Source: Zootoca vivipara
Lineage: Eukaryota
Assembly (NCBI RefSeq): GCF_963506605.1
Contig: NC_083285.1
Location: 39,246,001-39,310,000, forward strand
Length of the DNA stretch: 64,000 bases
Reading direction: 5' to 3'
The notes beneath the pieces were generated by a model. That model did no database searches, was not told where the DNA came from, and worked only from the letters and a program-made list of their open reading frames with translations. Shown here piece by piece: positions 11,402 through 48,647 of this stretch (its first letter is position 1; each line of letters opens with the position of its first letter). The position numbers were made by a program, and so were the translations under genes.

Positions 11402-11429
11402 CTGAAATTACCGCCAACGGCGCCGACAT
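11402..11429 (-). CDS. NUP205: NUP205 exon 1 coding part (start codon)
   Basis: ccaagATG TCG GCG CCG TTG GCG GTA ATT TCA G|gtatgg = MSAPLAVIS, in a CpG island; phase joins exon 2 correctly; resembles human MATPLAVNS. Confidence 0.9.
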
Positions 11430-12699
11430 CTTGGACGCTCACTGACTCGAGCCAAAGCGCCCTTGCAGCCGAGAAGACCCCAAAACAGAAAGAGGCGACT
11501 AAACCAATGCCTGATCAAGAAATAGCCCTCGGAGAGATGCACACATTTAGGCTGCTGAATAGCCGGACTCCTCTGTTAGCCAGCATTTACTACATCGAGC
11601 CCCACCCGGCTCTCAGTTCATTACAAAAACAAAACCGTTCAGCTTGAACATTTGGAGCACAGGCACAGTGTGGCCACTTAATCGGTAAAATCAGGACCCA
11701 GAAGCAAAGGATGCTGGGAATTCCGGCTCTTGCTCTCCTTCTGGTAGATAGGCGGGAAAGGGAAAAGCAGCCTTTAAGACTAAACGCTCCTCCTAGGGAA
11801 TAGTACGGCCTATTAAGCACAATGGAATTTACTTCTCAATAAGCTTGCATAGGATTGCACTGCAATGGGCTATTATCCACTGGTTTCAGGGTGATTGTTT
11901 CGTTCAACGTAGTTGGGGGGTAGGGAAGGACCAGCGAAGTTGCATACAAAAACAATGCTGCATCCTTTATCTTTCTTTAGGTGGGTATAGGTAATACCTA
12001 TACTCCCCCCCAACCTGAAAGTAGCAACAGAAGCCTCCATGGTAGATTTGCAGCTCTATCCAAGGCAAGGTCCCTGATCCCCATACAGTATTAGCTTGGG
12101 AAGAGTTTGGGAGGGGGGGGCGTATTGAAAAGCAGCCAACACATACCCAGAAGTGGGTGTTTTCGTACGAAGGATGACGGCTAAATCATCGGAAGCTTTT
12201 CTGATGAACAGTTGGGAAAGCAGCAAAACCAACCAAAAGTCTTGCTAGCACCCAAAACCTGACACCAGAGGGTAGAGACAAAGAGAGGCTGCATGTTGCA
12301 ATAGATAAAAGTACAACTAAAGAATAAGTATTTGTGTTTGTCTGTTATAAATATTTGTATATACACCGGCGCGCTTCGCGTTTAGTTAAATAGCAGTACT
12401 GTACAAAAAACAACAGCAGCAGCAAACGACAATATTCACAGCGGCCAAAATCTATAGGAGAAGTACAGCCAACAAAAATCCTAGCTACGGCGCTTCACAA
12501 GCGGGACTGCACCTGCTACAAAATATTCCCGCGTGGGAGTGGTACAGTGACAATAAAGTACTGTACAGTACAGTATTTCTAGTTCTATACAGTACAAGCC
12601 AGCAGCCGCCGCCACGCGCCTTCTAGCGGCTTCCTGTTTCCTCCCCGTCGCCCTATGTGCTCTTGCGCATGCGCGCTCGGAATAAAGTGCCGTCGGGCA

Positions 12700-12877
12700 A
12701 AAGCTGAACCGCATTTTCCTTTAGCAAAAGTCTGCGTCGCGTGGGCAGGTGACGGCGTCCCCGTCTTCCGTGTAAGGTCTCGGTTGCCAGTGACCTTCCG
12801 TCTTTTGGTAGAAGGAGCGCTGCCCTTGCCGCTGCCGTCGGGCACCTGGTCGCCGTGGAGCCGCGATAGCGAGGCGG
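12700..12877 (+). other. POLR3H: Probable non-coding first exon of POLR3H (start approximate), homologous to CNOT4 exon 1
   Basis: Strong donor CGG|GTGAGT at 12877/12878 in a CpG island; next acceptor ctttcag|G at 14617/14618, 23 nt before the POLR3H ATG. Confidence 0.7.
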
Positions 12878-12935
12878 GTGAGTGGAGCCACGAGGGCTGC
12901 TTGGCTGCTGCGAGAGAGCGGAGGCTTCCAGGGGA

Positions 12936-13026
12936 CATAGCTGCCAAGTTTTCCCTTTTCTCGCGAGGAAGCCTATTCAGCATAAGGGAATTTCCCTTAA
13001 AAAAAAGGGAGAACTTGGCAGCTATG
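12936..13026. mobile_element. 91-bp hAT MITE in POLR3H intron 1
   Basis: TIR CATAGCTGCCAAGTT...AACTTGGCAGCTATG; perfect 8-bp TSD CCAGGGGA at 12928-12935 and 13027-13034. Confidence 0.9.
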
Positions 13027-14640
13027 CCAGGGGACCTTTCAGGCCTCGGCCCGCTAGCGGGTTCCGGGGATCCCTCTGACAACAGGGCGGCTGGGAAGAT
13101 AGGAAGGAGGATCTGGAGAGCCAGGACGGCTCTTGTCCCGGTCACGCACATGGTTCAGCGGGCTGCCGTCCTAATGCACATGATCGTGTAAGCCTTAGCC
13201 TTCACGCACACCATTCTTCTGCTTAGCGTTTTTTATGTGCTAAGCATTTAATCTCATTTCATGAGAAAATTCTCTCTGGCAGATTACGTTTCTGTAGTGC
13301 AAAAGGTGCATTTTTAGAGTAAATGGGTTCAGGCCGTAGGTGTTTCTAGCTTTACGACAGCGAGGTTGCTACTCTGCAAATCAGTGCTGTGCAACGAAAT
13401 GGAAAACCAAACGTGCACGATGCTCAGTCGGTAGTTGGATATTCCCTCTTTCCCACCCCCACCCACATCCTCGCAGGAACTCTGTGAAGGTGGTAGGCTA
13501 AGAATGATTGAGGGGTCCATGATTATCTGGTGAGTTGCATGTCTCAGTAGGATTTGAACCTAGGGCTCCAGAGTCCTAGTCCAGTACTCCCAAGCATGGA
13601 AACATGCTGGTTTTAGAACTGAGCATGTTGTAGGGCAAATAAAATAGATGCACTTGAATTTGGTGCATGGCCCTGTGAGATATAGGAGTGCATCCCCAGA
13701 ACACGCCAATGTTTAACCTCAGAATTCTATGATTCTTCTTTTTTTACCTAAATGTTTTTCTATCAAATTGATGGTCATTAAATAATCTTAAGAGATTCCA
13801 AGGGCCAGTTTGGACATAACAATTCTGCTTAATAAAATAGGTCATTAATCCAAGACCAAGCCTTACACCAGCACACTCCCCCCCCCCCGCACTAGCTTCA
13901 AGGCTTTTATTGCGGTTACTTTAATTTTGGTCTTAAAAAGAAATCCTGATATGAAACCAAGTTCAAAGTTATCATTCACACAATCTGTTCTGGTTCTGTC
14001 CTGTGAAACTCTTCCTCCAGGAGTTTTTGAATGCCTCATAATCTTTAGAGCATATTTTAAAACCTTACTTTTTGGGAAAGCTTTTAATGTGCCCTAGTAC
14101 TTTAAATATGAGTTCTGTGTTTGCCATTTTAATTCTCAGCATAATTGAATGTATGTTAGCCTATTAAATTATGACAGTTTGATATACTGTACCACTTTCT
14201 GAGTTCATATGTTAAGAAAATGGTATTAAGTGTCCTAAAGTAACAAAACATGGCTTATTTTATGATAAATAGTATGTTTCACAGCACACTGCAGATAGTA
14301 CCGGTAGACATTTTCCAGCAAATAAGGTTGGAAAATGGACAAATGAAAAATGTATTAAGAATAACTAATGTAAAATCTGATGATACAATTCATAATCAAA
14401 TTAGCTTCCTCAGAATGGTTACAAAATTCTTTTCTTTAATAACCATTGATTTTTACAAGGAATTGAAATGCACACCAGATTAGGTCAATGGAACAAGACC
14501 CACCAGAGTCACAAAAATAACTTCAGCCTCTTTTCCCCTCCTGTCACCACCTGCTGTCACAACCATCATTGCAGAAAAGAACATTGTCTTGCTGACTCTT
14601 CTTTTTTCCTCTTTCAGGAACTTTACTTTTGTTGGCCACC

Positions 14641-14751
14641 ATGTTTGTGTTAGTGGAGATGACTGATACTGTGCGGATTCCTCCATGGCAGTTTGAAAGG
14701 AAGCTTAATGATGCTATCACTGAAGAGTTGAATAAGAAGTTAGCCAATAAG
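14641..14751 (+). CDS. POLR3H: POLR3H (RNA polymerase III subunit RPC8/RPC25) coding exon 1
   Basis: gccaccATG Kozak; [37 protein letters not shown]|gtaaag; exon begins at 14618. Confidence 0.96.
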
Positions 14752-15360
14752 GTAAAGGTTAAGTGTTGTAGGCCATGACTGACTAGAGGTTTTTATTGGA
14801 AAACAACTGTATTGTAAATGTGAAGATTTTTAGAAGCAGGCCCGTTTGTTGACTGAAAATAGCATCTGTGGCTTAGTGCTACCGTAATAAACAGTATAAT
14901 GTCATATGTAAGACTAGGCATGATGCAAAATCACATACGGTACTTAACTGGTGTAATTGCAGTGGCTACAGTAGTTTGCACAACTGGAAAAATAGCTCTA
15001 CCAGATTTTGACCAGTCTAAATTCAGTATCCAAGTGAGATGCAATGTAGTATAAGACTGGAATGTAAATGGGAGATAAAAAAAAATAAGTAGAAACTAGA
15101 AGTGGAGCATTTGTTTAGGAAATGCACTCCAATTTCTTCTTAGCTATCTGTCATCTTTCTCTACTGCTTTTGCCAGCTGAGGCCGGCACATATAATTTTC
15201 TGCTAAACAGTTATTTTGAATCAGTTCACCAGTTTGGTTCATCTGCACACCTTTCCTTGTGCATAAACTCTGGCATGTTGTTTCAGGAAGGCTTAACACA
15301 TTTCCTCTAGTTGCTGGAATTTATTGCTCTCTGGATTTTGTTTTCCCCACCCCCAAACAG

Positions 15361-15457
15361 GTTGTGTATAATGTTGGCCTCTGCATCTGCCTTTACGACA
15401 TCACAAAACTGGAAGATTCCTACATATTCCCAGGAGATGGTGCATCACATACAAAAG
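15361..15457 (+). CDS. POLR3H: POLR3H coding exon 2
   Basis: [32 protein letters not shown]; 97 nt. Confidence 0.96.
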
Positions 15458-15917
15458 GTTTGTCTCTTATTATTCTTAATATGAGCACTTTGGATTGGTA
15501 GGAGAGTTGACAACCACAAAATTTAAGAGAGGTACCTACAGCAATATGAACATGAGTAGACAGCACTACAGTACTTTAAGATCTCTATTTTCTTCATGTG
15601 GGAATCTACGTTTTGCTAGTAAAGCAGCAGATACTTTCTGTAGCAAATACATTTGGGAACTGCTTCATAGGCAGAAATCAGAGGAAGTCCCTTTCACTTC
15701 GTTTAATCCTTAGAACTTGCTATCCCTTAGGAGAGTTATGGTGACACGCTAGTTATGCTGCAGTACCACATTTTCTTACCTATTGCTAATATTCTCAAGG
15801 AAGTAGGCTTGTTCTACATGTTTACATATTGATGTTCTAGGTTGGAGAATTAGAAATACAGTATGATATGCTGACCTATGGCATGGTTGGGGAGCAACTT
15901 CAGCAGAAGGACTAGAT

Positions 15918-16053
15918 CAGGCATCCCCAAACTTCGGCCCTCCAGATGTTTTGGACTACAATTCCCATCATCCCTGACCACTGGTCCTGTTAGCTAAGGA
16001 TCATGGGAGTTGTAGGCCAAAACATCTGGAGGGCCACAGTTTGGGGATGCTTG
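15918..16053. mobile_element. Palindromic hAT MITE (CAGGCATCCCC family)
   Basis: 8-bp TSD GACTAGAT. Confidence 0.9.
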
Positions 16054-17381
16054 GACTAGATCCAGAAGTGAGCAGCCCTCCATGAGCCACTTTGACAGGT
16101 GGTCACTTAATTGGTCACGCTTATTGCTTAGACATACATTATCTCCTGTGTAGGATCTGATGTGCAGGCACACATTAAAAATCATGGTATAAATAGCTTG
16201 CAGTACCACGCTATATATGCCAACTTTGGAAGCAAGTTTACGTTTGGGACAATCCCAAGTAAGTGGGTACCGGATGTGGCCTAGGCTTTGTTTTCAGATT
16301 CACATTTGAAAAAGCAGGGTCCTTGTGCCTTTAAAAGCTGCGTCTCAACTATCAGGTCTAGCAAGACATAGTTGATTTCCAATAGCAAACATGAGGCTGC
16401 CAGGGGCATGTATTACCCACGCACCACATGGCAGCCATGTTGTATTATGCCGTGTCCCTCCATGGCAACCATTTTGTAACTAGTGCCAACAGGGCTCTCA
16501 AAATTCAAAATGTGCCAATTGGTCCAAAAAGGTTGGTGATCCCTGTCTTAAATTCTCAACTTATCACACTTTTCTACTTTAGAATGCTGATGGATTTATC
16601 AGTCATGGAATGGTGACAGTATATTACTTGCAATGTGCATAATATGTACCTTTATGCTCCTGCATAAATGACACTTGTTCTTATCCTTTCCCTTGACTTG
16701 TTTTGCTATTTTTTTATTCATAAGTTTCTTACGGAAAATGAAAGGTACTGACAGACTTTTTCCCCAGTGTGTATTTCAGTTGTTCACTCTAGAAACTGCT
16801 GGTGTCTTGACCTTCATTTATTTTGTATCTAATATCTGACAAGACAAATCTAAAAGACCACTTGGGTGCAAACAGGGCTACTCTAATCTTCATTTCCCTT
16901 ACTGCTGCAGTTCACTCAGCACTGTCCTATTTGCTCTAGTTACCGATCAAAACAAGTCTATTTTCAGTCTGCCAGGCTTGCAGAATCTCAAAAAGCTGAC
17001 ACAGCTGCCCAGAAACTGGACTGATGCACATCATTAGAGCAATGACATAGAAGCATAGATTGAAAGCTTAGTTTTCCTTAGGATTTCTCAGACAGTTTTT
17101 GAGAGCTGGAGAGGTGCAATTAATGATGTGTGATCATGGCTTTTGAAATGCTTAGTCCCCTAAACATGAGTGTCTCCAGCTGTGTGCATGTCTGAGTGAA
17201 GATACTGGATTTTGTCAAGTAGAGAAAGTCAGAAGCAAGGGCCAACTCCACCCACCCATGCTTTGCCAGTATCATGGTTTTGGGTCTTTTGGTTCTGCCC
17301 TGCATTTAATACAGCATTTTACACCTTCCCATTGGAGCCCATGTCCTATATTTAAAGAGACAAAACCCTTATGCTTCTGTT

Positions 17382-18915
17382 GTTGTTGTTGTTTAGTCGT
17401 TTAGTCGTGTCCGACTCTTCGTGACCCCATGGACCATAGCACGCCAGGCACTCCTGTCTTGCACTGCCTCCCGCAATTTGGTCAAACTCATGTTCGTAGC
17501 TTCGAGAACACTGTCCAACCATCTTGTCCTCTGTCGTCCCCTTCTCCTAGTGCCCTCAATCTTTCCCAACATCAGGGTCTTTTCCAAGGATTCTTCTCTT
17601 CTCATGAGGTGGCCAAAGTATTGGAGCCTGAGCTTCACGATCTGTCCTTCCAGGGAGCACTCAGGGCTGATTTCCTTAAGAATGGATAGGTTTGATCTTC
17701 TTGCAGTCCATGGGACTCTCAAGAGTCTCCTCCAGCACCATAATTCAAAAGCATCAATTCTTCGGCGATCAGCCTTCTTTATGGTCCAGCTCTCACTTCC
17801 ATACATCACTACTGGGAAAACCATAGCTTTAACTATACGGACCTTTGTCGGCAAGGTGATGTCTCTGCTTTTTAAGATGCTGTCTAGGTTTGTCATTGCT
17901 TTTCTCCCAAGAAGCAGGCGTCTTTTAATTTCGTGACTGCTGTCACCATCTGCAGTGATCAAGGAGCCCAAGAAAGTAAAATCTCTCACTGCCTCCATTT
18001 CTTCCCCTTCTATTTGCCAGGAGGTGATGGGACCAGTGGCCATGATCTTGGTTTTTTTGATGTTGAGCTTCAGACCATATTTTGCGCTCTCCTCTTTCAC
18101 CCTCATTAAAAGGTTCTTTAATTCCTCCTCGCTTTCTGCCATCAAGGTTGTGTCATCTGCATATCTGAGGTTGTTGATATTTCTTCCGGCAATCTTAATT
18201 CCGGCTTGGGATTCATCTAGTCCAGCCTTTCGCATGATGAATTCTGCATATAAGTTAAATAAGCAGGGAGACAATATACAACCTTGTCGTACTCCTTTCC
18301 CAATTTTGAACCAATCAGTTGTTCCATATCCAGTTCTAACTGTAGCTTCTTGTCCCACATAGAGATTTCTCAGGAGACAGATGAGGTGATCAGGCACTCC
18401 CATTTCTTTAAGAACTTGCCATAGTTTGCTGTGGTCGACACAGTCAAAGGCTTTTGCATAGTCAATGAAGCAGAAGTAGACGTTTTTCTGGAACTCTCTA
18501 GCTTTCTCCATAATCCAGCGCATGTTTGCTATTTGGTCTCTGGTTCCTCTGCCCTTTCGAAATCCAGCTTGCACTTCTGGGAGTTCTCGGTCCACATACT
18601 GCCTAAGCCTGCCTTGTAGAATTTTAAGCATAACCTTGCTAGCGTGTGAAATGAGCGCAATTGTGCGGTAGTTGGAGCATTCTTTGGCACTGCCCTTCTT
18701 TGGAATTGGGATGTAGACTGATCTTCTCCAATCCTCTGGCCATTGCTGAGTTTTCCAAACTTGCTGGCATATTGGGTGTAGCACCTTAACAGCATCATCT
18801 TTTAAAATTTTAAATAGTTCAGCTGGAATATCATCACTTCCACTGGCCTTGTTATTAGCAGTGCTTTCTAAGGCCCATTTGACTTCACTCTCCAAGATGT
18901 CTGGCTCAAGGTCAG
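17382..18915 (-). mobile_element. RTE-BovB LINE, 5'-truncated, uninterrupted RT ORF (17393..18895, 500 aa), in a POLR3H intron
   Basis: RT motifs QGCILSP and LRYADD; (CAA)n tail; perfect 12-bp TSD TATGCTTCTGTT at 17370-17381 and 18916-18927. Confidence 0.95.
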
Positions 18916-19192
18916 TATGCTTCTGTTAAACAACTACAAACATTTTGCCACACTTGCTTTGGTGATTGTAGGAACAGTCACTGAAACTTAGGAGGTTTTG
19001 GCTTGAAATGGGAATACCACTGTATGGTGATATTTGAGCCTGCTCAGCCCATTCATTATTTATCCAAGTTTTTTCAGAAACTAGTAAATAGCAAAATGCT
19101 AGTATTGGATTGCTATTTTAGCAATCCATAGGGAGGGAGGGAATCGTGACTTGTTCAAGCAGCATATTGTGTTGTTTCTTTTTCTTTTTCAG

Positions 19193-19279
19193 TGCATTTT
19201 CGGTATGTTGTGTTTCACCCCTTTCTGGATGAAATTCTGGTTGGAGTAATAAAAGGCTGCAGTCTGGAAGGAGTTCGGG
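19193..19279 (+). CDS. POLR3H: POLR3H coding exon 3
   Basis: (V)[28 protein letters not shown]; 87 nt. Confidence 0.95.
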
Positions 19280-19769
19280 GTAAATTTTAACTTTTACTAG
19301 TAATTCACCAAATAATCACAGGAATATTGTGTGTAGGACTGCAGTGGGTGTCTAGAATTATGGAATATTATACCAAGATAACCAGCAGATATCTCAAAAG
19401 AAAGACTGTTCTATTAATAAAGTTTGACGTTATTATGGTTAAGATGTTTGGAATCACTCCTTAATAGCAGCAAAACATAGCCAAAAGAACTGAACTTCAG
19501 TTTCTTTTCTGAAAAATAAATAAAAATAAGAATATAGAATGAAAGGTGGAAAAACATATTTGAGGCTTAAAGTTGTTCTCCTTTATAGTCCTGATGGGTG
19601 TTCCAATTCTGCATTTATTAAATTTACAGTATAGCGGAAAGAATGCTGGACATAGGTTCAGATTCCTTATTGGACATGCCACTAGGTGATGGCATGGGGA
19701 AAGCTTAAATTCTAGGAGTCACATTGCATCCATCTTGCTTCTTTATTAATCTGAACTTCTTTTTTGTAG

Positions 19770-19833
19770 TTTCACTTGGGTTCTTTGATGACATCATCAT
19801 TCCTCCAGAATCCCTACAGCAACCTGCCAAGTT
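19770..19833 (+). CDS. POLR3H: POLR3H coding exon 4
   Basis: (V)[20 protein letters not shown](F); 64 nt; followed by GTATCCTC. Confidence 0.95.
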
Positions 19834-21154
19834 GTATCCTCTAAACAGTTCCATGATGCTGGATGTCTAAAGATGTATAATATGAAATCTACTTCCCTTC
19901 GGATGGAGTCTATTTTTACTTAATGCAAAAACCCCTATGAGTATGTTGCAAAACGTTCCAGTAGATTGTGTTACTTAATGCTAGACTAATATTAACATTA
20001 GGGACGTGGGTGGCGCTGTGGTCTAAAACAGAGCCGAGGGCTTGCCGATCAGAAGGTCAGCGGTTCTAATGCCTGCGATGGGGTGAGCTCCCGTTGTTTG
20101 GTCCCAGCTCTTGCCCACCAAGCAGTTCGAAAGCACTTCAAGTGCAAGTAGATAAATAGGTACTGCTCCGGCAGGAAGGTAAATGGCGTTTCCGTGCGTT
20201 GCTCTGGTTCGCCAGAAGCGACTTAGTCATGCTGCTGTCTGCGGATAAACACCGGCTTCCTAGGCCTATGGAGCGAGATTAGTGCCGCAACCCCAGAGTC
20301 GTCCGTGACTGGACCTAATGGTCAGGGGTACCTTTACCTTTAATATTAACATTCAGTATTCCACAGCTCAGGAAAACCTCAATGTAATTTTTGAACAACT
20401 GGATGTATCCAACACTTTCACAATGGATCTTTCATTTACCCTCATCCCTCACTGCCCCCCCCAAGCTCATTTAGAGAGGAATTATCATTGTGAACTGTGT
20501 CATCTGGTGCGGCAGGTGTAAAAGGTCAGGCTTGCAGGGCACAAGATTCCTCCGCCTAATCTTGGGCAACCTCCCCAGGCACAAACTCTGTAGCCATGGA
20601 TGGACACAGCCTTCAGTTTTTGGTAGGGCCCCCAGACTGTAGGGAAGCTTTGTGGAAACTGTTGGGGAAGAGGAAAAGATCCATTGCACAAAGCTGCCTT
20701 CCACTTGCACATTGGATACAACTCAGATTAGTTGGGTTGAGGGCATGGTGTGAAGGGCATTAATAGGAAGAGATCACTTGAGGTTTGGGAAGCGGCAGTC
20801 CAAGTCAAACGTCTGATTTGTTTCCATCCTGAGCCCTGTGGTTAGTTGCTGGATTGAATTCAATTTTCTTGCTTCATAACGTAAGAGACATTTATTAGCA
20901 GATCTAGCATGGTCTGTGTTCTGTGAGAAAACCTTGCACAGGGGACAGTGAAATGTATTTTCCAGAATGCATTTAGAATAATTTGCATCAGAAAATTTTC
21001 CATTGCTGTAGAGTGATCTAATTTAGCATGCTTATTTTACTTGTACTTAGTTAAAAAGCTGTGAGAGCCAAATCTCAGAAAAGGGATTTCATACTTCAAT
21101 TTAAACTTCTATGCCTTCTTATCCCACTGTTGCCTTAACTTTCTATGTGCCCAG
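19834..21154 (+). other. POLR3H: U12-type (minor spliceosome) GT-AG intron of POLR3H
   Basis: 5' site GTATCCTC; branch point CCTTAAC at 21133-21139, 15 nt before the 3' splice site; reading frame requires these boundaries. Confidence 0.9.
20001..20340 (+). mobile_element. Sauria/Squam1 SINE (inside the U12 intron)
   Basis: GGGACG..GGTGGCGCTGTGG tRNA-like head, ACCTTT tail; TSD TAATATTAACATT. Confidence 0.9.
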
Positions 21155-21362
21155 TGATGAAGCAGAACAAGTATGGGTTTGGGAATATGAGACTGAAGAA
21201 GGAGCCCATGACCTGTATATGGATACAGGAGAGGAAATCCGTTTCCGTGTGGTTGATGAAACTTTCATTGACACATCCCCAACAGGCCCAAGCTCTGCAG
21301 AGCCCTCCACCTCTAGTGCCACAGAGGAGGTGCAGAAGAAGGAAGCCCCCTACACACTAGTG
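21155..21362 (+). CDS. POLR3H: POLR3H coding exon 5
   Basis: [35 protein letters not shown]...KKEAPYTLV; ORF 21111..21374; 208 nt. Confidence 0.96.
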
Positions 21363-21396
21363 GTAACTATTTAACACTACTCCTTTCTACATAAAA

Positions 21397-21750
21397 GGGA
21401 CCCAGGTGGCGCTGTGGGCTAAACCACTGAGCCTAGGGCTTGCTGATCAGAAGGTCGGCGGTTCGAATCCCTGTGACGGGGTGAGCTCCCGTTGCTTGGT
21501 CCCGGCTCCTGCCAACCTAGCAGTTCGAAAGCACATCAAAATGCAAGTAGATAAATAAGAACCGCTATAGCGGGAAGGTAAATGGCGTTTCCATGTGCTG
21601 CTCTGGTTTGCCAGAAGTGGCTTTGTCATGCTGGCCACATGACCTGGAAGCTATACGCCGGCTCCCTCGGCCAATAATGCGAGATGAGCGCGCAACCCCA
21701 GAGTCAGTCACGACTGGACCAAATGGTCAGGGTTCCCTTTACCTTTACCT
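21397..21750 (+). mobile_element. Sauria/Squam1 SINE
   Basis: Full length; flanking repeat CCTTTCTACATA; ~35 nt downstream of a POLR3H donor. Confidence 0.9.
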
Positions 21751-21974
21751 TTCTACATAGGCTTTTGAAATATCCTTTCACTACCTAAAAGTAGTCACAT
21801 CCTTGGTGATAGGATGTAGACCTTATTCTTTCAGCCATTTATAATTGTGAGGAAAGGGTATGAGGATCTCTAAGTGACCTCTGAAAAACACAGAATTCAG
21901 AGAATACTGCAGATTAAATGGATAATCCAGATTTTCATGTGCTAAATTCTAACATATATTCTTTCTCTGTGCAG

Positions 21975-22028
21975 GGATCTATCAGTGAACCTGGTCTGGG
22001 TCTCCTATCCTGGTGGACAAACAGTTAG
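21975..22028 (+). CDS. POLR3H: POLR3H last coding exon
   Basis: GSISEPGLGLLSWWTNS*; total CDS 621 nt = 206 aa; AATAAA hexamers downstream (~22544, 23076, 23163, 23557). Confidence 0.96.
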   Translation, partial: GSISEPGLGLLSWWTNS

Positions 22029-24419
22029 CCAAAGGGGGAGACTTCCACAAAATGGGCATTTACCAGATTGGAAAAGCCACTGTGTGCATTTTTCTCTCCT
22101 TAGAAAGCAACTGCAGAATGGAAGCTTTGTGTTTCTATTTCTACTTTGCCCTACTTCTGAAGTAGAAGACGAGTGGGAACATCCAGTGTGATGTCATCAA
22201 CACAGAATATTTGCATACCATGGCCCTGTCAACAAACTCTTGTGGTTCTGATCTTTCCACCTAGCAGAACTGGGTACAAGAGCCTAGGAAGAATCTGCTA
22301 CCCTAAAAGAAATTTAAGACAGGCCTTGTGTTTAAAGCAGATGCAAGAAGAAACTTTGAAGAACTTCAGTCTAGAAGAAACCAGTAGCGATTTGAGAGGT
22401 GGAGAGGAATGATATTATGAAAGCTTGCAGTCATTTTACTGAATCCCTCTTGTTCCTTTTCCCCATTTGGATGGAGGTGTTTCTGACAGTGGAGGAAATT
22501 CATGCCCTTGGCTTTTAAAGGTCACATACTGATGAGGAAGATGAATAAAGCTAGGGCAAGGGTAAGAATCGAATCTATATAGCCATCAGGCTGCCTCCAA
22601 TGGGTCTTCCTGAATATCTTGGAACTATTTGCCCTGGAAAATTCAGTGAGCCACTGTACTTGCAGAACACACTAATAACTGGGGTTAGTAAGTCTGCAGT
22701 GTTTAGAGAGCAAACAAACCTTGTTAGCTACCCTTCTTAATCTTGCTGTCTTCCATGAAAACATGTGACTTCAGTTTGTTTTTAACTTAGAAACGTAGAT
22801 GGACTATAGCCTTTTTTCCCTCTACAGAACAAAATTCTAATGAAAGCTGCTGTAGATATGAATGACACCTCAAAACTCAACAACTTTTGTTGACTTTCTG
22901 TATAAGGAGGAAGAGATTCACATCTTGAAGTAGATAATACTTCCTTGGGCATTGGATAGGAGTGCAAACATAGACAATGGCCATTCAGTTTTTGGTCTTT
23001 GACTGCATTGTAGTGGAAAATATAGAACATTGGGCAACAGTGCAAAAGGCACACAAAGACACAATCACAATACACAATAAAAACATTCCTATGGCATAGG
23101 ACTATGTATGTGGACCACTAATGAGAAAAGCAAAGCTAGGACTACCAGAGCATCAGGTGATAAATAAAGCTCTTCATTTTAAGAAGGCCTTTGACGTGCA
23201 TGTCTTATGGTAACATACTTGAATAGAGCCTGCTTCTTGATGACAATATATTTGGCTTACTGGTGAAGTCACTCTGACTTGGCTGTTCCTGCTTCAAAGC
23301 CTTGATTGGAGGTTTTAATGCTGTTGTAACCCACTGAGGGTTGTGCAGGACATCTGCTTCTGATGTTCCTATGTGAGGTGATTAATGCAGAGCCAATGTC
23401 TTTCTAATAAATATTGCTAGTGTATAATGACTGGAACAGCAGCTTTGGTTATAAAGGATATACGAGTTAACTATACAGCCAGAGAAGTGGCAAGGCCATC
23501 AGGTTTTTAACTGCTTTTCAATGAAAGCCTCCTGAAATGTAGGGACCTGAAGTTCTAATAAACTTTGCACTGGTTTAAATCTTCTATTTTATTGTATAGT
23601 GCTGCCTAAAAGAATTTACATTTTGTGTGTGATGTTGACATGACACATCAACCAATTGAATAGGTACACAGTTTTTAAGCACCTAAATAAAGTTCCCCAG
23701 AAATAACCACTTTTCTTTCTTGCCATTAAGCAAAGGCTTTTCTATTGTGACTCCGTCAATATAGAATCTGAACAAGCTTAATTAATAAATACACTCAGGC
23801 TCCTAGCCAATAACCAATTATGTGTGACTTAGCACCACTGAAATCATTAAGACTTTTGAGTAGACATGATTTTTTATTTAAAATATAGTTTAATCATTAG
23901 AATTTCTGTTCAATGACATTTTAAAAAATCATATATTTAAAAAATAAGAAATTATAAACTCAACCACTGCTTTAAAATGCTTGCTGAACCAGAGAGTCAT
24001 GTAGCTGAAGTTCAAGAAGTGCATTGTCTAAGCTTTGTCGAGGGTTGGGCCCACTGCACTGATTGTACAACATTGTACTGCTTTTATTCCACATGGTTGG
24101 AAGGACACATTTGAAATCCATAAGTGAACTTTAGAGAATATTAGAATCATCGTCTTTATTTTAACCCTTGTATATAACACACTTCAATGTGGAAAATTCC
24201 CAAGATGACTTATCAATGCATCCAGCAGAGTAACAAAGTAATCCAAAAATTAAAACATAAACATAAACCAAAGGCAGTGTTAAATTCACAGCTCAAAGGA
24301 CTGCAGAAATAAGCTTTGTGTGTGTGCCATTTTCTGACCAGTCAATGTTTTAGTAAATCTGCCACAATTCTTGAGTAATGCTATTCCAAGATGGCCTAGA
24401 TTAAAAATGGAATCAAATA

Positions 24420-24872
24420 CAGGTGAAACTCGGAAAATTAGAATATCGTTGAAAAGCGCATTTATTTCAGTAATGCAACAAAAGGTGAAACCAATATATG
24501 AGATAGGTGTATGTATGACATCCAAAGCAAGATATGTCAAGCCTTTATTTGTTGTAATTATTTGTCGTTAGGTGGGTCAATTATAAATGGAATGTAATTA
24601 ATGACCAAACTGCGGGAGGCAGTGCAAGACAGGAGTGCCTGGCATGCTATGGTCCATGGGGTCACGAAGAGTCGGACACGACTAAACGACAACAACAATT
24701 AATGAAATGCAATAGCGATGTTTATTTTTGTATTATTGTAAGTATTTGTTTTATTACTGTGGAATTTCCAAAAGAAAGCATTTGTAAAAATTAAAAGAAA
24801 AATTAAAAATAAGTTGCATTACTGAAATAAATGCACTTTTCAACGATATTCTAATTTTCCGAGTTTCACCTG
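24420..24872. mobile_element. Tc1/mariner-type MITE with ~60-bp TIRs
   Basis: TA|CAGGTGAAACTCGGAAAATTAGAATATCG ... CGATATTCTAATTTTCCGAGTTTCACCTG|TA. Confidence 0.88.
24605..24696 (+). mobile_element. BovB extreme 3' fragment nested in a Tc1/mariner MITE
   Basis: Near-identical to the 3' end of the 17.4-kb BovB; TSD AATTAATGA at 24596-24604 and 24697-24705. Confidence 0.9.
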
Positions 24873-25405
24873 TAAAATTGGAATTTAAAGCGCCTTATAA
24901 AATTCATAACAAGCACTCATAACATCTAATTCACAATACAAAACATTAGTCTAAAACCGCCCCCAGCAATTTGCACATAGCTCCCGTGTCAAAAACTGAA
25001 TTGCTAGCATTTGATCTATACTAAAATATGGCGGAAGCCTTTTAGCTGGTTGCAGCCCCCGCAACCCCTCACTTGGAAACAATTCGTGTTTACCCAACGT
25101 TGTTGTCGGAGCGAGTTCTTGGCATCCCAGCAGCTTGTTTCCAGCACATAAACTGCCTCGAAATCTCCCCTTGCCGAGGCGTTTCCTGTTCTTGGAGCCT
25201 ACGTATTTTAAGTCTTGGTGGGGATTAGGGAGGGAAGAGATTGCGTTGACATACCTTGCTTGGCTTCATTTCTAATTTTATTTTGAATGCAAGCGAAGGC
25301 CAGTTTGGAGTATCGCAGAATTCTTGGGCGCCTCGGCCCAACAAGCCTACGAAGGAAAGGTGAGAGAGACCGGAGCTCCCCGATAGGCAGGAGCGGCCCC
25401 TAGGG

Positions 25406-25775
25406 CGCGAACTATCGCCGACACCGCGGCCATTTTGGAAAACCGGCACGGCGTGACGTTTCCTAAAGCGCCGTCGTCGACGAGAGGCCCCGAAAGCAGC
25501 AGAGGCGCCCAAAGTAACGCCGGGATAGAAGCGTCAGTTTTTTAGGCTAGAGGGACCCCGCTGCAGATTCTCAGAAGGCTCCCTCAGACGACAGCCGCTA
25601 TTCCTCTTGTTATGCGGCAGAACAAAGTCGTAATCTGTGCTAACGTAATGCTTCAGACACAATGACAACCAGGTAAGGCTGCCTTGACGAATCCTGAATG
25701 TGAGGACCCAGAAGCAATGGACGCTGGGAAGTGTAGTCCAAGCCTGCCTCGTGGTTGGTACTGTAGCGGGAAAGG
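25406..25775 (-). pseudogene. Decayed duplicate of NUP205 exon 1 and promoter (copy B), still CpG-rich
   Basis: Collinear with 11402-11761 at an offset of ~14.0 kb; 26/28 identity 25703-25730 vs 11693-11720; ATG at 25433 reads MAAVSAIVR vs MSAPLAVIS; orthologous donor lost. Confidence 0.8.
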
Positions 25776-25920
25776 ATGTACTCGCTCGGTTCTGAGAGTC
25801 AAGCGTCTATTCAGCAAAGCCGGTTTCTTCAGTTTACTTACCTTAATTTAAAAATAAAATCTTTTGCATTATCCAGTCTCTGTGTGATTTCAAGGTTGCT
25901 TTCAGGCGGAATTAGCAATC

Positions 25921-26240
25921 GTAAAGGTAAAGGGGCCCCTGCTGACCATCAGGTCCAGTCATGTCCGACTCTGAGGTTGCGGCGCTCATCTCGCTCTATA
26001 GGCCGAGGAAGCCGGCGTTTGTCCGCAGACAGCTTCCGAGTCATGTGGCCAGCATGACAAAGCTGCTTCTGGCGAACCAGAGCAGCGCACGGAAATGCCG
26101 TTTTCTTTCCCGCCTGAGCGGTCCCTATTTATCTACCTGCACTTTGATGTGCTTTCGAACACACCCCGTTGCAGGGATTCGAAACGCCGACCTGATCAGC
26201 AAGCCCTAGATTCTGTGGTTTAACCCACAACGCCACCTGG
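25921..26240 (-). mobile_element. Sauria/Squam1 SINE (internal deletion)
   Basis: AAAGGT tail repeats at left, reverse-complement head at right. Confidence 0.88.
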
Positions 26241-26471
26241 TTTTGCTTAAATATAGCAAGGCATGCACATGCCCAAAATAAGTAGCTTCGGAAGGTTTCA
26301 AAAGTATTCAAGAATAAGACTATAAGAATAACACTTTAAGGCTGGGTTCCAGTATTTACATTTTACCTGGAGCGAGCATCGCTGGAGCTAATGGCTCTTA
26401 CTACGGTAGTAGAAATGTATATGCTTGCACTGTTACTCTCCAGCATACCACATAAGTGTAGTTGAAGGATA

Positions 26472-26822
26472 AAGGTAAAGGTAAAGGGACCCCTGACCAT
26501 TAGGTCCAGTCGTGACCGACTCTGGGGTTGCGCGCTCATCTCGCATTATTGGCCGAGGGAGCCGGCGTATAGCTTCCAGGTCATGTGGCCAGCATGACAA
26601 AGCCGCTTCTGGTAAACCAGAGCAGCACATGGAAACGCCGTTTACCTTCCCGCTGTAGCGGTTCCTATTTATCTACTTGCATTTTGACATGCTTTCGAAC
26701 TGCTAGGTTGGCAGGAGCTGGGACCAAGCAACGGGAGCTCACCCCGTCACAGGGATTCGAACCGCCGACCTTCTGATCAGCAAGCCCTAGGCTCAGTGGT
26801 TTAACCACAGCGCCACCTGGGC
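26472..26822 (-). mobile_element. Sauria/Squam1 SINE
   Basis: Full length; TSD GTAGTTGAAGGATA. Confidence 0.9.
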
Positions 26823-28200
26823 CCCACGTAGTTGAAGGATAGTAGATTTTAAATCAAACGGATTTCCTGGTCAGTATTGGTTGTTTGATTTACAAACACT
26901 GGAAATGTTAATGTGATACGTTCAGTTGCTTGGAAGAAGCTTTATTCAGTTTACAGTTGTATTTAGAATAAGGAGTGCAAGGCACCAGCACTTGTGAAAA
27001 AAATAGTTGCTTTATGCTGAGCTATGGAAAGTGCATTTCCTACACCCCAGCATAAATTTGCTATAAACACCACCAGCTCATATACAGTACTGAGCTGATT
27101 ACTTGACACTGAGCACTGAGGTTAGACAACACTTCTTAAAATAAAATTAAAAAAGCTCCCTTATGTACCTCACTGTGTGTTCATACCTTCTCATGTGAGT
27201 TATTTATTACGTTGGCTTAACAATATTAATGCAAATCCATAGCACTTTTTTCTTCTTTACATTGTTCTACTTGTGTCTCTAAAAGACCATGAATTGACAA
27301 CCTATTACAGGATCAATGGACTTCTGGTTCAGAATGATTAATATGCTCATCTCGCATATTGCTGGAATAGTTGGGATATAAGCACTCAGGAGTGTTTGGT
27401 GGTGAATAGAAATTATTTTATATTTAATTTCTTATTGTTCAAGGTGATCTTATGGATATATTTTTTACTCAGTAGTAGTAAGTACTCAGTACTAGGCTTG
27501 CGCCCTAGTAAATATATTTAGGGTTGCAGCCTTTATCTCTCCTACCTTCTTATAAGCACCATTTACCTTTAGGGATACTCCATTTAATACACTGTGTCTA
27601 AAATTAATATTTTATTGTGTACTATTTGTACAAGGTTATTAGTATACAAGGGTACACAACATTATATATTCATGTATGTATATGCTGCCTTATAGAGTTG
27701 CATAGGCAAAATTGACAAATTTCTGCCCACTAGGCAATTACAGTCCACAACAGTGGGGGAAACTACAGAGGGCGGAAAAGACAAAGATAGAGCAGGAAGA
27801 ATGTGGGCAAGTGCCATTGCACTTACTTCATTCAAAAGGAATTTAAAGAATCCTGTAGTCTGTCAAGGGAAAACCTTCAAGAATAAATTCCAGGAGCCTC
27901 CCAAGCTTCTCCCTGTGGTTTTCAATGCATTACAATTACAAATGAAATACAGTATCATTGGGTCAAAAGGTTTAGATGGAGATCCACAAGGCCCTATGCT
28001 TTTAAAAATATTTTCAGGGTTTTCCAAACTTGAGTTTCAGCTGTTTTTGGACTACAGTTCCCATCATCTCTGCCCACTGATCCTGCTAGTTAGGGATGAT
28101 GGGAGTTGTAGTCTAACAAAAGCTGGAGACTCAAGTTTGGAAACCCTGAGCTAAGTTAAACGAATGAGAATCATTGAGGGGGATGTGGGCTCAGGTACCA

Positions 28201-28460
28201 CCATTGCTTGGTCCCAGCTCCTGCCAACCTAGCAGTTCGAAAGCACGTCAAAGTGCAAGTAGATAAATAGATACCACTCCAGCGGGAAGGTAAACAGCGT
28301 TTCCGAGCGCTGCTCTGGTTTGCCAGAAGCGGCTTTGTCATGCTGGCCACATGACCTGGAAACTGTACGTCAGCTCCCTCAGCCAATAACGCGAGATGAG
28401 CGCCAAAACCCCAGAGTCAGTCACAACTGGACCTAATGGTCAGGGGTCCCTTTACCTTTA
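28201..28460 (+). mobile_element. Sauria/Squam1 SINE, 5'-truncated
   Basis: Body and ACCTTT tail match the other copies. Confidence 0.85.
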
Positions 28461-30329
28461 CGAGATCAGGGGTCAGCAAACTTTTTCAGCAGGGGGCTAG
28501 TCCACTGTCCCTCAGACCTTGGGGGACGGACTATATTATGGGGGGGAAATGAACGAATTCCTATGCCCACAAATAACCCAGTGATGCATTTTAAATAAAA
28601 GCACACATTCTACTCATGTAAAAACACGCTGATTCCCGGACTGTCCACGGGCTGGATTTAGAAGGCAATTGGGCCTTAGTTTGCCTACCTATGTACTAGA
28701 TTCATGTACTATGTACTATGTACCTATGTACTAGATTCATAGGTGGCCTCTGTGGCACAGAGCTTCTTTGGATGATTGGGTTGGGATCGAAGGACTCAGG
28801 TGGTTCTTAACATATCCTGGACCCAAGTTGTTCCAAGGTTTTGTATATTAGCACAAAACTCTTGAACCCAGCTTGGTAGCATATGGGAAGCCAGTGTATA
28901 TATTTTAGCAGAGGTTTATATGGTGCTGGCTATCTGTCCCCATAAGCAGTCTAACTGTTCCATCTTGCACTAGCTGGAGGTTCTGCATCAGGCTCAAGGG
29001 CCAATCCACATACTGTATACTGCTTTGCATGCACTACAGTGGCCAGGTTATCTCATTACCAAATGAAGCTGGTAAAAGGCACTCAACCACAAGAGGCTCC
29101 TTGGACAGAAAGATTACAAAAATATATCCAAACAAAAATATACTCTTAAGCTATGTACCTGATCCATTACAGGGGGAAAATATTATACGGTATGCTAAAG
29201 CCTAATGTTTAGGATGTCACTATACTGTATTAAAATTCCTTAGGCTACAGCAGACAGCAGAATATTCTTGTGTTTATAAAAACAGCCAGGAGCGTCTGCC
29301 TCCGGTCACAGTTAAACTGTTGTTTAGTAAAAATGAATACAAACCGAAAATGAAATGAAATGAAATAAAATAGCTATGCATCACAGCAAGCATCCTGAAG
29401 TAAAACAATTACTGGTTATATCAGTGCAAACATAACCAGCTATGTAGCCCCAGCCCCCATAAACAGTACTGTAAATATATTGTAATGGGAGCAATGCACA
29501 GCAATATCAGCTAAAACGTCTCCTACCGTAGGTAATATTGCGCCCCTGGCAGAACCATCCAGATTGCGCCCCCTAGCCACGGACAAATTAGCTATTCTTT
29601 CCACCTCTCCTCCAACACCCCCTCCACCCATTCAATTCACCCTCTGTTGAAAACCATTTCTTATGAGACAATAATCGATATTTATATTTATGGACATAAT
29701 TTGAAGCCGATTTTCCGCCCCTCAATCGCCTGCGCCCCTGGCGAGGGCCCACCTCACCACCCTCTAGCTACGGGCCTGCCTGGGTGACAGCCCGTCTCTT
29801 GAATGTACTGTACGTATTTTTAAGTAATTAGTGCATATGAGAACAAGTCTCAATGGTGAATCTGTGTGTCATACAAGGATTACTACCGCTAGGAAATCCC
29901 CAGAGGGTCACAGCAGAACAACGAAGAATATTGTTTGCCACCGACCATGCCAGGTTTTGTTGTGATACTGTATAAGCTTTTGCCGACCGGAGTCCACGAA
30001 TCATGAATATTCATGGCACTGTCTATCCCATCCCTCCGTGAACCCCTTTCCGGCCGTGTTTAAAATGATCGGAATCTGTTGCATCCTTTTGAAAAGGGGA
30101 GGGATTCTTAAATGCAGGCTCCCGCTCTCTAGGAATGTGTGCCGGAGGAAGCGGAGCGGGCTGGGGTGGATAAGCGAACCAGGAGCATTTCAAACGAACC
30201 ACTAGCTGACGTTAAGCCAGCTCAATCCCTCTGATTGATTTGGAACAAACCGGTTTAAATGCCACAGCTATCACTTCAGGGTTTCCTGGGCGACAGTGTG
30301 ACCGCCTTGTCAACAGCCTAACCCACCCC

Positions 30330-31250
30330 CTTTTGAACCCAGGGAAGGACACGCTCGCCGGTTGCCCTAGTTCCCTCCCCCGCAGTAAAGACTACAACTC
30401 CCGTCATGCTCTCTCTCGCGTCGCGTCGCCTTCTACCTTTTTCCTTTCCCCCGCACCCGCCTCTCCGGCGGCTCGTGCGCATGCGCCTTGGGAGCAGCGT
30501 CCGGGGCAGGCAAGCAGTCTCTCCCTAATGTAAGATGGTGGCCGGTCTGGCAGCGGAGCGCGCAGAGCCTGGAGATTACCCGTCTCTCACATAAAGGTCG
30601 TCGGAGGAGCCGCCTGGACCCCTTCCCCGCTGCTACAGAAGCCGAGCGAGCGAGTGAGCGGGAGGAAGGGAGCGCGAGAGGGTATCGCCGCCCCCGCCGC
30701 CAGACAGCCGGTCGCCGTGGAGCAGGGACGACGAGGCGGCGGGTGAGTGAGCAGCCGGGGCTGGGGGAGCGCTAGCCGGTGCTGCCTAGCTACGAGAGAG
30801 CGGAGGCTTCGCGAGGAGCCTGCAGGCCTCGGCCATCCCTCATGCGCCTGCTCCAGACCCTGGGCCGGCGCCGGGGCTCCCTCTGGCCGGAGGGGCGGGA
30901 AGGGGGGCTGGGGCTAGCCAGGGCGGCTCCTGCCCCTGCGGCGGCGGCGGCGAGGGCCGGCTCGCCTCCCTCAGGACCGCAAGGGTGGGCTGAGGGGTGG
31001 CCGGCGCCTGGCCGCTCGCGCCGGAGACCAGCTGGATGTAGAGGGGGCTCCGAGGGAGGCGGAGGCCACGCTGTGGCTGCTCAGGGCGGGGGCTCGGGAG
31101 TCAATAGAGGCGGAGGGCTCCCGGGCAGCGCCTCCCTCGCATCCCCATCCCCACCCCGCCGCTGCCTCTCGCGTGTGCGTGTTCAGGAGGGGAGAGGGAA
31201 CCCGGGACCTATCGCTCATAGGCTTTGCTCCGCTGCTGGGTCTGATAAGG
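30330..31250 (+). promoter_or_regulatory. CNOT4: CNOT4 CpG-island promoter
   Basis: Very GC/CpG rich; ZNF143-type ACTACAACTCCCGTCATGC from 30391; NRF1 palindrome TGCGCATGCGC at 30476-30486. Confidence 0.85.
30500..30742 (+). other. CNOT4: CNOT4 non-coding exon 1 (start approximate)
   Basis: Donor CGG|GTGAGT at 30742/30743 in a CpG island; coding starts in exon 2 (acceptor 46517/46518). Confidence 0.75.
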
Positions 31251-44819: not shown

Positions 44820-46602
44820 AAATAATTTAGTTGCTCAAGGGAGCCATGGACTCAAAAAGGTTGAAAACCTCTGTCTTCTGCTGTCAATGTAACTCCATTG
44901 AAATTCAGTAAGAATTTCTAAGTGTGTTTGCTGACACCTACACCCCATTCTCTAGATTAGAATCTGGTTGTATTTGCCCACAGAGGAACAAGCAGGGCAA
45001 ATTAGAAGACAGGATGTTCAGATATCATTTGTGTTGTTAATTACAAATCTTGAACTGCATTATGACAAGCAAAACTATTTCTCTCAATTTGTTCTAAACA
45101 AATCATGAACTTTGTTAAACACTTGGACAAATCAGTCTTTAACATGTATAGAGAATCCCAGCTATAGTTTCTCAACATAGTACCTAAGGTTACTTTTAGC
45201 ACACCAGTTCATTTTAAATTCTAAATATTATCTGCTTCTGGGCACCAAGATGCTTGTGTTTGTATTCATGGCCTAGTGCTACCTATTGTCGTAGAAGTCA
45301 CTATTCCTTGTGCTCCATTTTTTTCTGCAACCAGTAGTGGCAGCTTGCTGATGTTTGTAGAAAGCTTTTTGATTTAGTTTTTCATCTTGTCAAATTGATG
45401 GGAGCCACTGGAAATTGAGCAAGTGTTAGAGGAAAAGACATTGATGTTGTTTGGGATAATAATAATATCAATGCTTTTCTGAATCAATTCAAGAATTGTT
45501 TGCTTTAGTACTGCAAATGCTGCATTACTTAGATGAACACTATTTATATGGGCTGGCATTGATGGTGGTTCTGAGCTGATTTTATGTGGTTGAGGGACCC
45601 CTGGCACTTCAGTAAATAAAATGTAAAACTTCTCTAACTCTGCCTGAGCAATGTTTGCCAAACAATCAAATGCAGGGAACCTTCTTTCTGAAGGTCAGAT
45701 TGCCTCCAAGATAATGTTGGTACACTGGGTGCATGCTGGTAGTGGGTGGGGCAAGAGTCAGGGCACCCCTTTTCTTCCTTTCTGTCACACCATTTTTCTC
45801 GTGTTTTTCCTTTCCTTTCCATCTATATTATATTAAACCAAAGGCTGCAGATTTGACTGCTATTGATTTAGTTGATCACTGAACAGACTGCTGCAGGCCA
45901 GTTTCTATCACAGTAATTATACTGGAGAGCTTGCATACAACCTCCACATACCGTTGTGATTTCTAAGATATAGAATATACTCATGTGTTATAAATCCAAG
46001 GACATGTTGAGGTTTTTCTTTATGCCAGCTCTCGGCTGTGGAATTTCATTCCCCTCAATTGAATACTGGTTGGCTATTGGTTCATTTTTAAGTGTAGTAA
46101 ATGTCTTCACCACATATTGAGGGTTGGCTGGAGGGCTACAAACTCCAAAGTGTATAAGAATGCTTTCTGTGAATCATGTAAGAACAAAGAGTTGAAGAAA
46201 TTTTCACTTTGGCTGTTTACTTGGAGGACTTCATTACGCTGTTATACAACAAAGGGTTGTAGAATAATTTGAGATGTTTGCTTAAATGACAGTGGGAAAA
46301 CTAAAGGCATAGATGCCACTTTTTTCACAGTTCATTGAGAGTGGAAAACTTTGTGGGTTAATACCCCTTGAAAACTAAGTTGGAGGCTGGGAAATATTTT
46401 AAGCAAAAGCAATGAAAAAACCAAGCTTATAAACTGCTTTTTGATTCAGAGAGAATTAATTGGTTATGCTCCAATGTAGACTTAAATAGTAATTCATTCA
46501 TCTTTTTTCTTTTTCAGATCTTCAAGTATCTTCATTTTAGTTTTCTGTGCTATTCCTCCCTTAAGTTATTATATACTTTTTTGCTGCTGTGTGAAAACAG
46601 AG

Positions 46603-46776
46603 ATGTCTCGCAGCCCAGATGCGAAGGAAGACCCTGTGGAATGCCCCCTTTGTATGGAGCCTCTTGAGATTGATGACATAAACTTCTTCCCTTGCACCTG
46701 TGGTTACCAGATCTGTCGCTTCTGTTGGCATCGTATTCGCACTGATGAGAATGGGCTTTGCCCTGCTTGCAGAAAG
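46603..46776 (+). CDS. CNOT4: CNOT4 (CCR4-NOT RING E3 ligase) exon 2 coding part, C4C4 RING
   Basis: MSRSPDAKEDPVECPLCMEPLEIDDINFFPCTCGYQICRFCWHRIRTDENGLCPACRK|gt; exon starts 46518. Confidence 0.97.

Positions 46777-48564: not shown

Positions 48565-48565
<1 letters not shown>

Positions 48566-48646
<81 letters not shown>
48566..48646. repeat. Compound microsatellite (TA)n(GA)n; a smaller (AAT)n(AAG)n at ~34249-34284
   Basis: Direct inspection. Confidence 0.95.

Positions 48647-48647
<1 letters not shown>

Follow-up and report, generated by a model that had tools for sequence, protein, structure and literature searches.

Chimeric genes of the HYDIN2 type arise when an incomplete segmental duplication leaves the ancestral promoter behind and the copied gene takes on a new promoter and new 5' exons where it has been inserted (Dougherty et al. 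2017, PMC5345166). Duplications that stem from staggered breaks are known from inversion breakpoints in Drosophila (Ranz et al. 2007, PMC1885836), and head-to-head CpG-island promoters with ZNF143 and NRF1 sites have been described as well (Anno et al. 2011, PMC3082894; Ngondo-Mbongo et al. 2013, PMC3627581). The present analysis deals with a stretch of 64,000 nucleotides from Zootoca vivipara (NCBI RefSeq assembly GCF_963506605.1, contig NC_083285.1, positions 39,246,001 to 39,310,000 of the forward strand), hereafter called the window, in which POLR3H, a gene that encodes a subunit of RNA polymerase III, lies between NUP205 and CNOT4. The order along the window is NUP205 on the minus strand, a promoter module (U1), a segment that carries POLR3H (X), a second promoter module (U2), and CNOT4 on the plus strand. 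Judged from their alignment, U1 and U2 descend, as old and diverged direct copies, from a single ancestral head-to-head module, and the non-coding first exon of POLR3H is likely a sister copy of the first exon of CNOT4.

A duplicated promoter module

The window consists of CpG-depleted vertebrate DNA with few CpG islands. Two of its segments, copy A on the POLR3H side (12617-13139) and copy B on the CNOT4 side (30427-30936), resemble each other over a series of short anchors. A sequence-only reading of this DNA had listed these anchors, and all of them were found at the coordinates it gave: CGCCTTCTA at 12617 and 30427; GCTC[T/G]TGCGCATGCGC at 12659 and 30471, with 15 of 16 positions identical; GGTCGCCGTGGAGC at 12848 and 30710; GGCGG/GTGAGTG at 12873 and 30738, which places the donor GT at 12878-12879 and 30743-30744; and the 18-mer CGAGAGAGCGGAGGCTTC at 12911 and 30793. 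BLAST of copy A against copy B returns four collinear plus-strand high-scoring segment pairs (12617-12681/30427-30493, 12828-12935/30690-30817, 13032-13051/30815-30834 and 13057-13139/30864-30936; best E=1.4e-9). The best local score is 33, compared with 12.9±1.6 and a maximum of 21 in 500 dinucleotide shuffles, and the control comparisons (reversed, reverse-complemented, other CpG islands) score 20 or less. Furthermore, GCGCATGCGC occurs exactly twice in 64 kb, at 12665 and 30477, which are homologous positions. By the shuffles, the segment pairs and the controls, the likeness that had been claimed between the POLR3H side and the CNOT4 side is real and above chance. We therefore regard copies A and B, as they align, as true paralogues at the DNA level, comprising the promoter, the 3' end of an exon, its donor, and about 260 bp of intron. 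The earlier reading was right about the homology, but the end lies further out than it had supposed, at 13139/30936. An extension to the right of this point reaches a best score of 20, which is met by 1% of shuffles, and unrelated introns reach 19.

Copy A carries a 91-bp miniature inverted-repeat transposable element (MITE), bracketed by an 8-bp target duplication (CCAGGGGA) at 12928-12935 and 13027-13034. Going by the 8-bp duplication alone, we take the element to be a member of the hAT superfamily; no further copies of it were found in the window. Both the element and its target duplication had been recognized from the sequence, and once the element and one copy of the duplication are removed, 42 nt align without a gap, 36 of them identical.

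A comparison of the flanks revealed two additional collinear same-strand blocks upstream, at 11406-11761 and 25410-25775. The segment 11406-11511 matches 25410-25521 with a local score of 27 (shuffles 11.1±1.4, maximum 16), and 11680-11761 matches 25690-25775 with a score of 28 (shuffles 14.7±1.3, maximum 20); the offsets of these two NUP205-side blocks, 14004 and 14010, are 6 nt apart. A 28-nt core of the second block (S2) has just two copies in the window. Overall, there are five collinear same-strand homology blocks, each well above shuffles. The left edge of the homology (11406/25410) falls within about 5 nt of the donor of NUP205 exon 1, and flank comparisons to the left of 11406 and to the right of 13139/30936 are at chance level. 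No homology was detected between the middles of the modules (11762-12616 and 25776-30426); at least 27% of the U2 middle consists of repeats that are also present elsewhere in the window. A dispersed repeat as the source of the similarity was considered and ruled out, the two modules matching only each other in 64 kb.

Because NUP205 exon 1 and its promoter blocks are duplicated too, the repeated unit is, on these alignments, the entire head-to-head NUP205/CNOT4 promoter module and larger than had been assumed. The sequence-only reading had described a captured duplicate of CNOT4 exon 1; the paralogy stands, but the picture of an isolated, pasted exon does not. NUP205 exon 1 and its promoter lie on the minus strand of the module; the plus strand has a non-coding exon and its NRF1 site, followed by a consensus donor and some 260 bp of intron. 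The copies are direct repeats, in the same order and on the same strand, on either side of 13140-25409. Copy A stands in its native context beside a working NUP205 exon 1, so neither copy can be named the parent, and parent and daughter cannot be told apart from the sequence of the window. The modules, their parts, and the segment between them are as follows.

11406-13139, unstranded: U1, first head-to-head NUP205/CNOT4-type promoter module, 1.73 kb, by collinear homology to 25410-30936
11402-11511, minus strand: NUP205 exon 1 (block S1) with 5' untranslated region (UTR) and transcription start region; ATG 11429-11427, nine codons, donor GT 11401-11400
11680-11761, minus strand: NUP205 upstream promoter block S2, with a ZNF143 SBS-like core at 11693-11720
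12617-12681, plus strand: promoter block of copy A, with the NRF1-type palindrome TGCGCATGCGC at 12664-12674 (BLAST, exact-match search)
12675-12877, plus strand: non-coding exon of copy A, putative POLR3H leader; its 3' 50 nt are homologous to 30690-30742
12878-12935, plus strand: donor of copy A (CGG/GTGAGT, 8/9 consensus) and first intronic block, including the 18-mer at 12911-12928
12936-13026, unstranded: 91-bp MITE, with 24-nt terminal inverted repeats that are 96% complementary
13035-13139, plus strand: second intronic block of copy A, homologous to 30818-30936
13140-25409, plus strand: X, the 12.3-kb segment between the modules; POLR3H coding exons, preceded by the 3' part of the leader intron and followed by about 3 kb of 3' flank
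25410-30936, unstranded: U2, second copy of the module, 5.5 kb, by collinear homology to U1
25410-25521, minus strand: N1', orphan copy of NUP205 exon 1; ATG context retained, homologous donor absent
25690-25775, minus strand: copy of the NUP205 upstream block, with an ACTACA-TTCCCAG (SBS2-like) core at 25703-25736
30391-30493, plus strand: promoter of copy B, with SBS2-like ACTACAACTCCC at 30391-30410 and the NRF1 palindrome at 30476-30486
30500-30742, plus strand: non-coding exon of copy B, putative CNOT4 exon 1; donor GT 30743-30744
30743-30936, plus strand: intronic blocks of copy B, homologous to 12878-13139 minus the MITE

The SBS-like cores of the modules were compared with the SBS1/SBS2 motifs (PMC3627581). 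The orphan exon N1' sits in a CpG island (25250-25650, observed/expected 1.12), and no strong CpG island other than copy B precedes the CNOT4 ATG exon. The CNOT4-side exon contains ATGs at 30528 and 30535 (AAGATGGTGGCC, also YY1-like), which would open a short upstream open reading frame (ORF; window 30528-30590); the stretch that holds them has been lost from the POLR3H-side copy.

The putative POLR3H leader and its probable promoter

Gene identities in the window were assigned with Pfam, run on single exons, one by one. POLR3H (RPC8) lies on the plus strand and shows the SHS2_Rpb7-N and Rpc25 domains. The nearest named POLR3H proteins in the database are those of birds, and the six coding exons, all open, share 82-97% identity with bird POLR3H (tblastn, Ficedula P0155).

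14618-14751, plus strand: POLR3H ATG exon; acceptor AG 14616-14617 after a 20/20 pyrimidine tract, ATG 14641 in the Kozak context GCCACCATG, SHS2_Rpb7-N
About 15361-15456, 19192-19278, 19769-19833, 21155-21362 and 21975-22028, plus strand: the other five POLR3H coding exons, all open (tblastn, Rpc25); the stop codon, 22026-22028, is in the last of them

The ATG exon opens at a strong acceptor and therefore needs a leader exon. The splice sites proposed in the sequence-only reading proved correctly placed, with a donor GT at 12878-12879, an acceptor AG at 14616-14617, and an exon that starts at 14618, 23 nt before the ATG at 14641. Donors that match at least 8 of 9 consensus positions occur within 12600-14640 only at 12878 and 13530. 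Copy A is the only promoter-like sequence upstream of the acceptor at 14617: no promoter-like features were found in 13140-14617, and X contains no CpG island upstream of 14618 (observed/expected 0.49, then 0.15). In 12590-12877, copy A has a GC content of 0.63 and a CpG observed/expected ratio of 1.15, despite its strong divergence from copy B; in the DNA between copy A and the NUP205 island, this ratio drops to 0.48-0.59. The CpG islands of the modules range from 1.0 to 1.15 and contain NRF1/SBS-like motifs, recognized at the motif level only. As its CpGs have been retained after deep divergence, copy A is probably an unmethylated and hence active promoter. Between 12672 and 12877, that is, in copy A after the NRF1 site, there is no ATG. 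From the predicted 12877->14618 junction we infer a chimeric POLR3H mRNA.

A second consensus donor (CTG/GTGAGT, 13530) and a pyrimidine-rich acceptor (13895) in the leader intron would allow for an alternative leader exon or for a small additional one. The frame that starts from the ATGs at 12655 and 12669, at or inside the NRF1 site, is open to the end of the leader exon and, by eye, runs on across the predicted junction in the frame of the POLR3H ATG (12655-12877 + 14618-14643). If there were a start site further upstream than the NRF1 site, the POLR3H protein would gain about 80 residues. In bird POLR3H isoforms with extra length (P0159), the added residues are internal, and there is no N-terminal extension derived from a leader.

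Evidence from other species

The sole relative found with the 178-amino-acid ORF of copy A is P0163, an ORF called in another species, on a 1.8-kb contig of a sequencing-run assembly. By tblastn it can be followed along the window in three frames, from 12669 (the ATG within the NRF1 palindrome) as far as 13223, and it is of the A type, not the B type. Since this ortholog crosses the U1/X junction and lacks the 91-bp MITE, the arrangement is older than the split from that species, and the MITE would have been inserted later.

Translated-ORF searches with the short ORF of copy A and the exon ORF of copy B gave no matches, and a metagenome scan for the composite pattern of exon end and donor gave 0. 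The 18-mer did yield 22 metagenome matches, all on GC-rich microbial contigs and alike over an 18- to 24-mer only; these were dismissed as chance. In sheep, a 2.5-Mb interval is listed with CNOT4 and NUP205 and without POLR3H, at coarse resolution (PMC12717993), which fits POLR3H being a newcomer beside these two genes. A literature search on the order of genes around POLR3H in birds and reptiles found no usable account.

Proposed history and alternative explanations

With moderate confidence, we propose that a single duplication-insertion into the NUP205/CNOT4 module explains the order U1-X-U2, and that the two modules then divided the work between them. According to this model, a POLR3H segment without a promoter would have entered the module in one event, and about 1.7 kb of the target would have been duplicated to both sides of the insert, either by staggered breaks with fill-in or by replicative template switching. 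U1 would have continued to serve NUP205, while its copy A, spliced 12877->14618, would provide the promoter and 5' UTR of POLR3H. U2 would have continued to serve CNOT4 through copy B and the splice 30742->46600, and its copy of NUP205 exon 1 would be left as an orphan promoter that faces the 3' end of POLR3H. The POLR3H leader and CNOT4 exon 1 would then be sister copies, with the same NRF1 palindrome in both promoters.

A bolder version, which is possible but which we advance only tentatively, is that one event split a divergent promoter pair in its functions: U1 would hold the promoter of NUP205 and the only promoter of POLR3H, U2 that of CNOT4 and an orphan CpG-rich NUP205 promoter firing antisense toward the POLR3H 3' end, and POLR3H would have been rewired to NRF1-type control shared with CNOT4. 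If the single duplication-insertion is confirmed, an essential housekeeping gene would have been relocated as DNA without its promoter and have survived, because the insertion duplicated the promoter module of its target and thereby left none of the three genes, NUP205, POLR3H and CNOT4, without a functional first exon, whether retained or newly acquired. Long target duplications could then make a relocation viable immediately. The locus would also show promoter pairs dividing functions after duplication, and NRF1-type regulation common to POLR3H and CNOT4 would be predicted in this lineage.

Several observations weigh against the single duplication-insertion and the use of copy A as a leader. 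We infer that the ancestral module was present in single copy, that an empty site existed, and where X came from; both junctions, 12877->14618 and 30742->46600, are predicted from sequence. A different leader exon could be formed with the consensus donor at 13530. From the NUP205 ATG (11429) to the NRF1 site of copy A (12664), the distance is about 1.2 kb, with lower-CpG DNA in between, which is wider than in a classical bidirectional promoter. When the columns of the A/B alignment were permuted, the perfect blocks of 11-18 nt were no longer than the permuted runs, a result that is not significant and does not demonstrate selection. Finally, P0163 shares about 71-78% identity with the window in the translated exon part and about 82% in the intronic part inside X, which provides no indication of extra constraint on the leader exon.

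The last two of these points are what an explanation of copy A as a functionless, slowly decaying by-product, CpG-rich only through the nearby unmethylated promoter of NUP205, would lead one to expect: the exon is no better conserved in a related species than the neighbouring intron, and the run-length test gives no signal. We nevertheless consider this quite improbable. The CpG ratio of 1.15 is separated from the NUP205 island by the dip to 0.48-0.59, copy A retains an undamaged consensus donor and NRF1 palindrome, the stretch has no ATG, and POLR3H would be left with no visible promoter. Another possibility is that copy A is an alternative upstream first exon of CNOT4, or belongs to a promoter-associated non-coding RNA, and that POLR3H starts from a CpG-poor promoter within X, for example with an exon that ends at the 13530 donor. 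The donor of copy A could in principle reach the CNOT4 acceptor at 46600, and a consensus donor at 13530 and a pyrimidine-rich acceptor at 13895 do exist. Yet 13140-14617 is devoid of a CpG island or promoter-like features, 14617 is the first strong acceptor past 12878, and housekeeping genes, POLR3H among them, normally have CpG-island promoters, which makes this explanation unlikely in our view.

A different order of events is conceivable as well. POLR3H might already have been paired with NUP205 on the plus strand, the A-type exon being its own first exon, when the module was later copied upstream of CNOT4, so that CNOT4 would be the capturer. The native place of copy A beside the working NUP205 exon 1 agrees with such a reverse or two-step history, as does the dead copy of that exon in U2, and the window gives no polarity. 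However, two events would be needed, the arrival of POLR3H and a separate duplication, where the model of one insertion needs one, and a mammal has CNOT4 and NUP205 in a shared region without POLR3H; we rate the reverse history as improbable. That the similarity itself reflects only chance, or the composition of two CpG islands with common transcription factor motifs, has a negligible probability. The high GC content of both regions and the frequency of NRF1 and ZNF143 motifs in promoters would fit it, but the scores lie 11-13 standard deviations over dinucleotide shuffles, other CpG islands and reversed controls remain at chance level, the five blocks keep the same order and strand, and the gapless 36/42 match emerges only once the MITE is removed. 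The shuffle scores and control comparisons refute this explanation.

Other genes and repeats in the window

NUP205 is identified on the minus strand by a downstream exon that matches Pfam Nup192; its N-terminus carries on from exon 1 in the next exon, at about 9.5 kb. An Rfam scan of 11-32 kb found no family. CNOT4 begins its coding sequence far downstream of copy B.

46600-46776, plus strand: CNOT4 ATG exon; acceptor AG 46598-46599, ATG 46603, RING finger (zf-RING_4, E=1.3e-21)

Among the repeats, the POLR3H intron between the 15.4-kb and 19.2-kb exons contains, on the minus strand at 17393-18895, an open reverse-transcriptase ORF of 500 amino acids (Pfam RVT_1, E=2.4e-41), which is presumably BovB/RTE-like from its look, a type that would speak for a squamate host. 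A family of palindromic MITEs with ACTACAAYTCCCATCATCCC in the arms is found at 1994, 4838, 4908, 15955, 28051/28093, 43121 and 51329/51371. The ACTACAAYTCCCATCATCCC pattern has ten matches in all, against 0.04 expected; nine belong to this family, and the tenth, at 30391, lacks MITE flanks. ACTACAACTCCC at 30391 was accordingly rejected as a family member, its flanks being different. As the motif of the palindromic MITEs resembles the THAP11/ZNF143 SBS2, these elements may spread binding-site-like sequences.

A CpG-rich repeat similar to short interspersed nuclear elements occurs in both orientations at 21387-21752, 25921-26240, 26465-26825, 28201-28461, about 36.5-36.8 kb and about 41.1-41.5 kb; it accounts for part of the apparent CpG richness near 26 kb and part of the swelling of U2. 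In the introns of CNOT4, two CpG-rich stretches (55.0-55.6 and 61.0-61.3 kb) have translated ORF segments in common in opposite orientation and are probably another repeat family, not promoters, and a compound (TA)n/(GA)n microsatellite lies at 48540-48660.

Comparison with known systems

Head-to-head promoters provide the model for the module itself. Like bidirectional promoters, both modules combine divergent genes with CpG islands, the NRF1 palindrome and SBS-like motifs, so that a CpG island together with NRF1/ZNF143-type motifs is present at the motif level. Unlike them, with their spacing of less than 1 kb, U1 appears to be spaced at about 1.2 kb and U2 at about 5 kb; moreover, the module exists in two copies with, by the proposed model, divided use, and its factor sites are putative, recognized as motifs.

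The arrangement around X is similar to the staggered-break cases, in which duplicates of breakpoint sequence flank a rearranged segment and in which promoters or gene ends can be duplicated. The duplicates at inversions are inverted, whereas U1 and U2 are direct, as expected for an insertion or a template switch; they also agree with long target-site duplications in that direct repeats of the target lie on both sides of the insert.

Retrogenes reportedly recruit 5' UTR exons from nearby CpG promoters. Like them, POLR3H would be a relocated gene whose predicted expression runs through a non-coding exon recruited from upstream, with a new 5' intron. Unlike retrogenes, it keeps its introns and has six coding exons (14641-22028), so that it moved as DNA, not through mRNA. 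A retrogene route, which would have given an intronless coding body, is ruled out.

HYDIN2 can be regarded as the closest analogue of the POLR3H arrangement. In both, foreign 5' sequence precedes the gene body, which in POLR3H appears to have no promoter of its own, and the transcript, in the case of POLR3H a predicted one, fuses a borrowed non-coding first exon to coding exons. The putative 5' exon comes from the sequence of another gene here too, copy A being paralogous to the exon before CNOT4, and the principle of chimeric 5' UTRs, already known, is unchanged by this case. The fusion of HYDIN2 was shown by 5' rapid amplification of cDNA ends, while that of POLR3H is predicted here from sequence. 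In contrast to HYDIN2, POLR3H, an essential housekeeping gene, has a whole and highly conserved coding sequence; its borrowed exon would be one of two copies made at the insertion, and the event is old.

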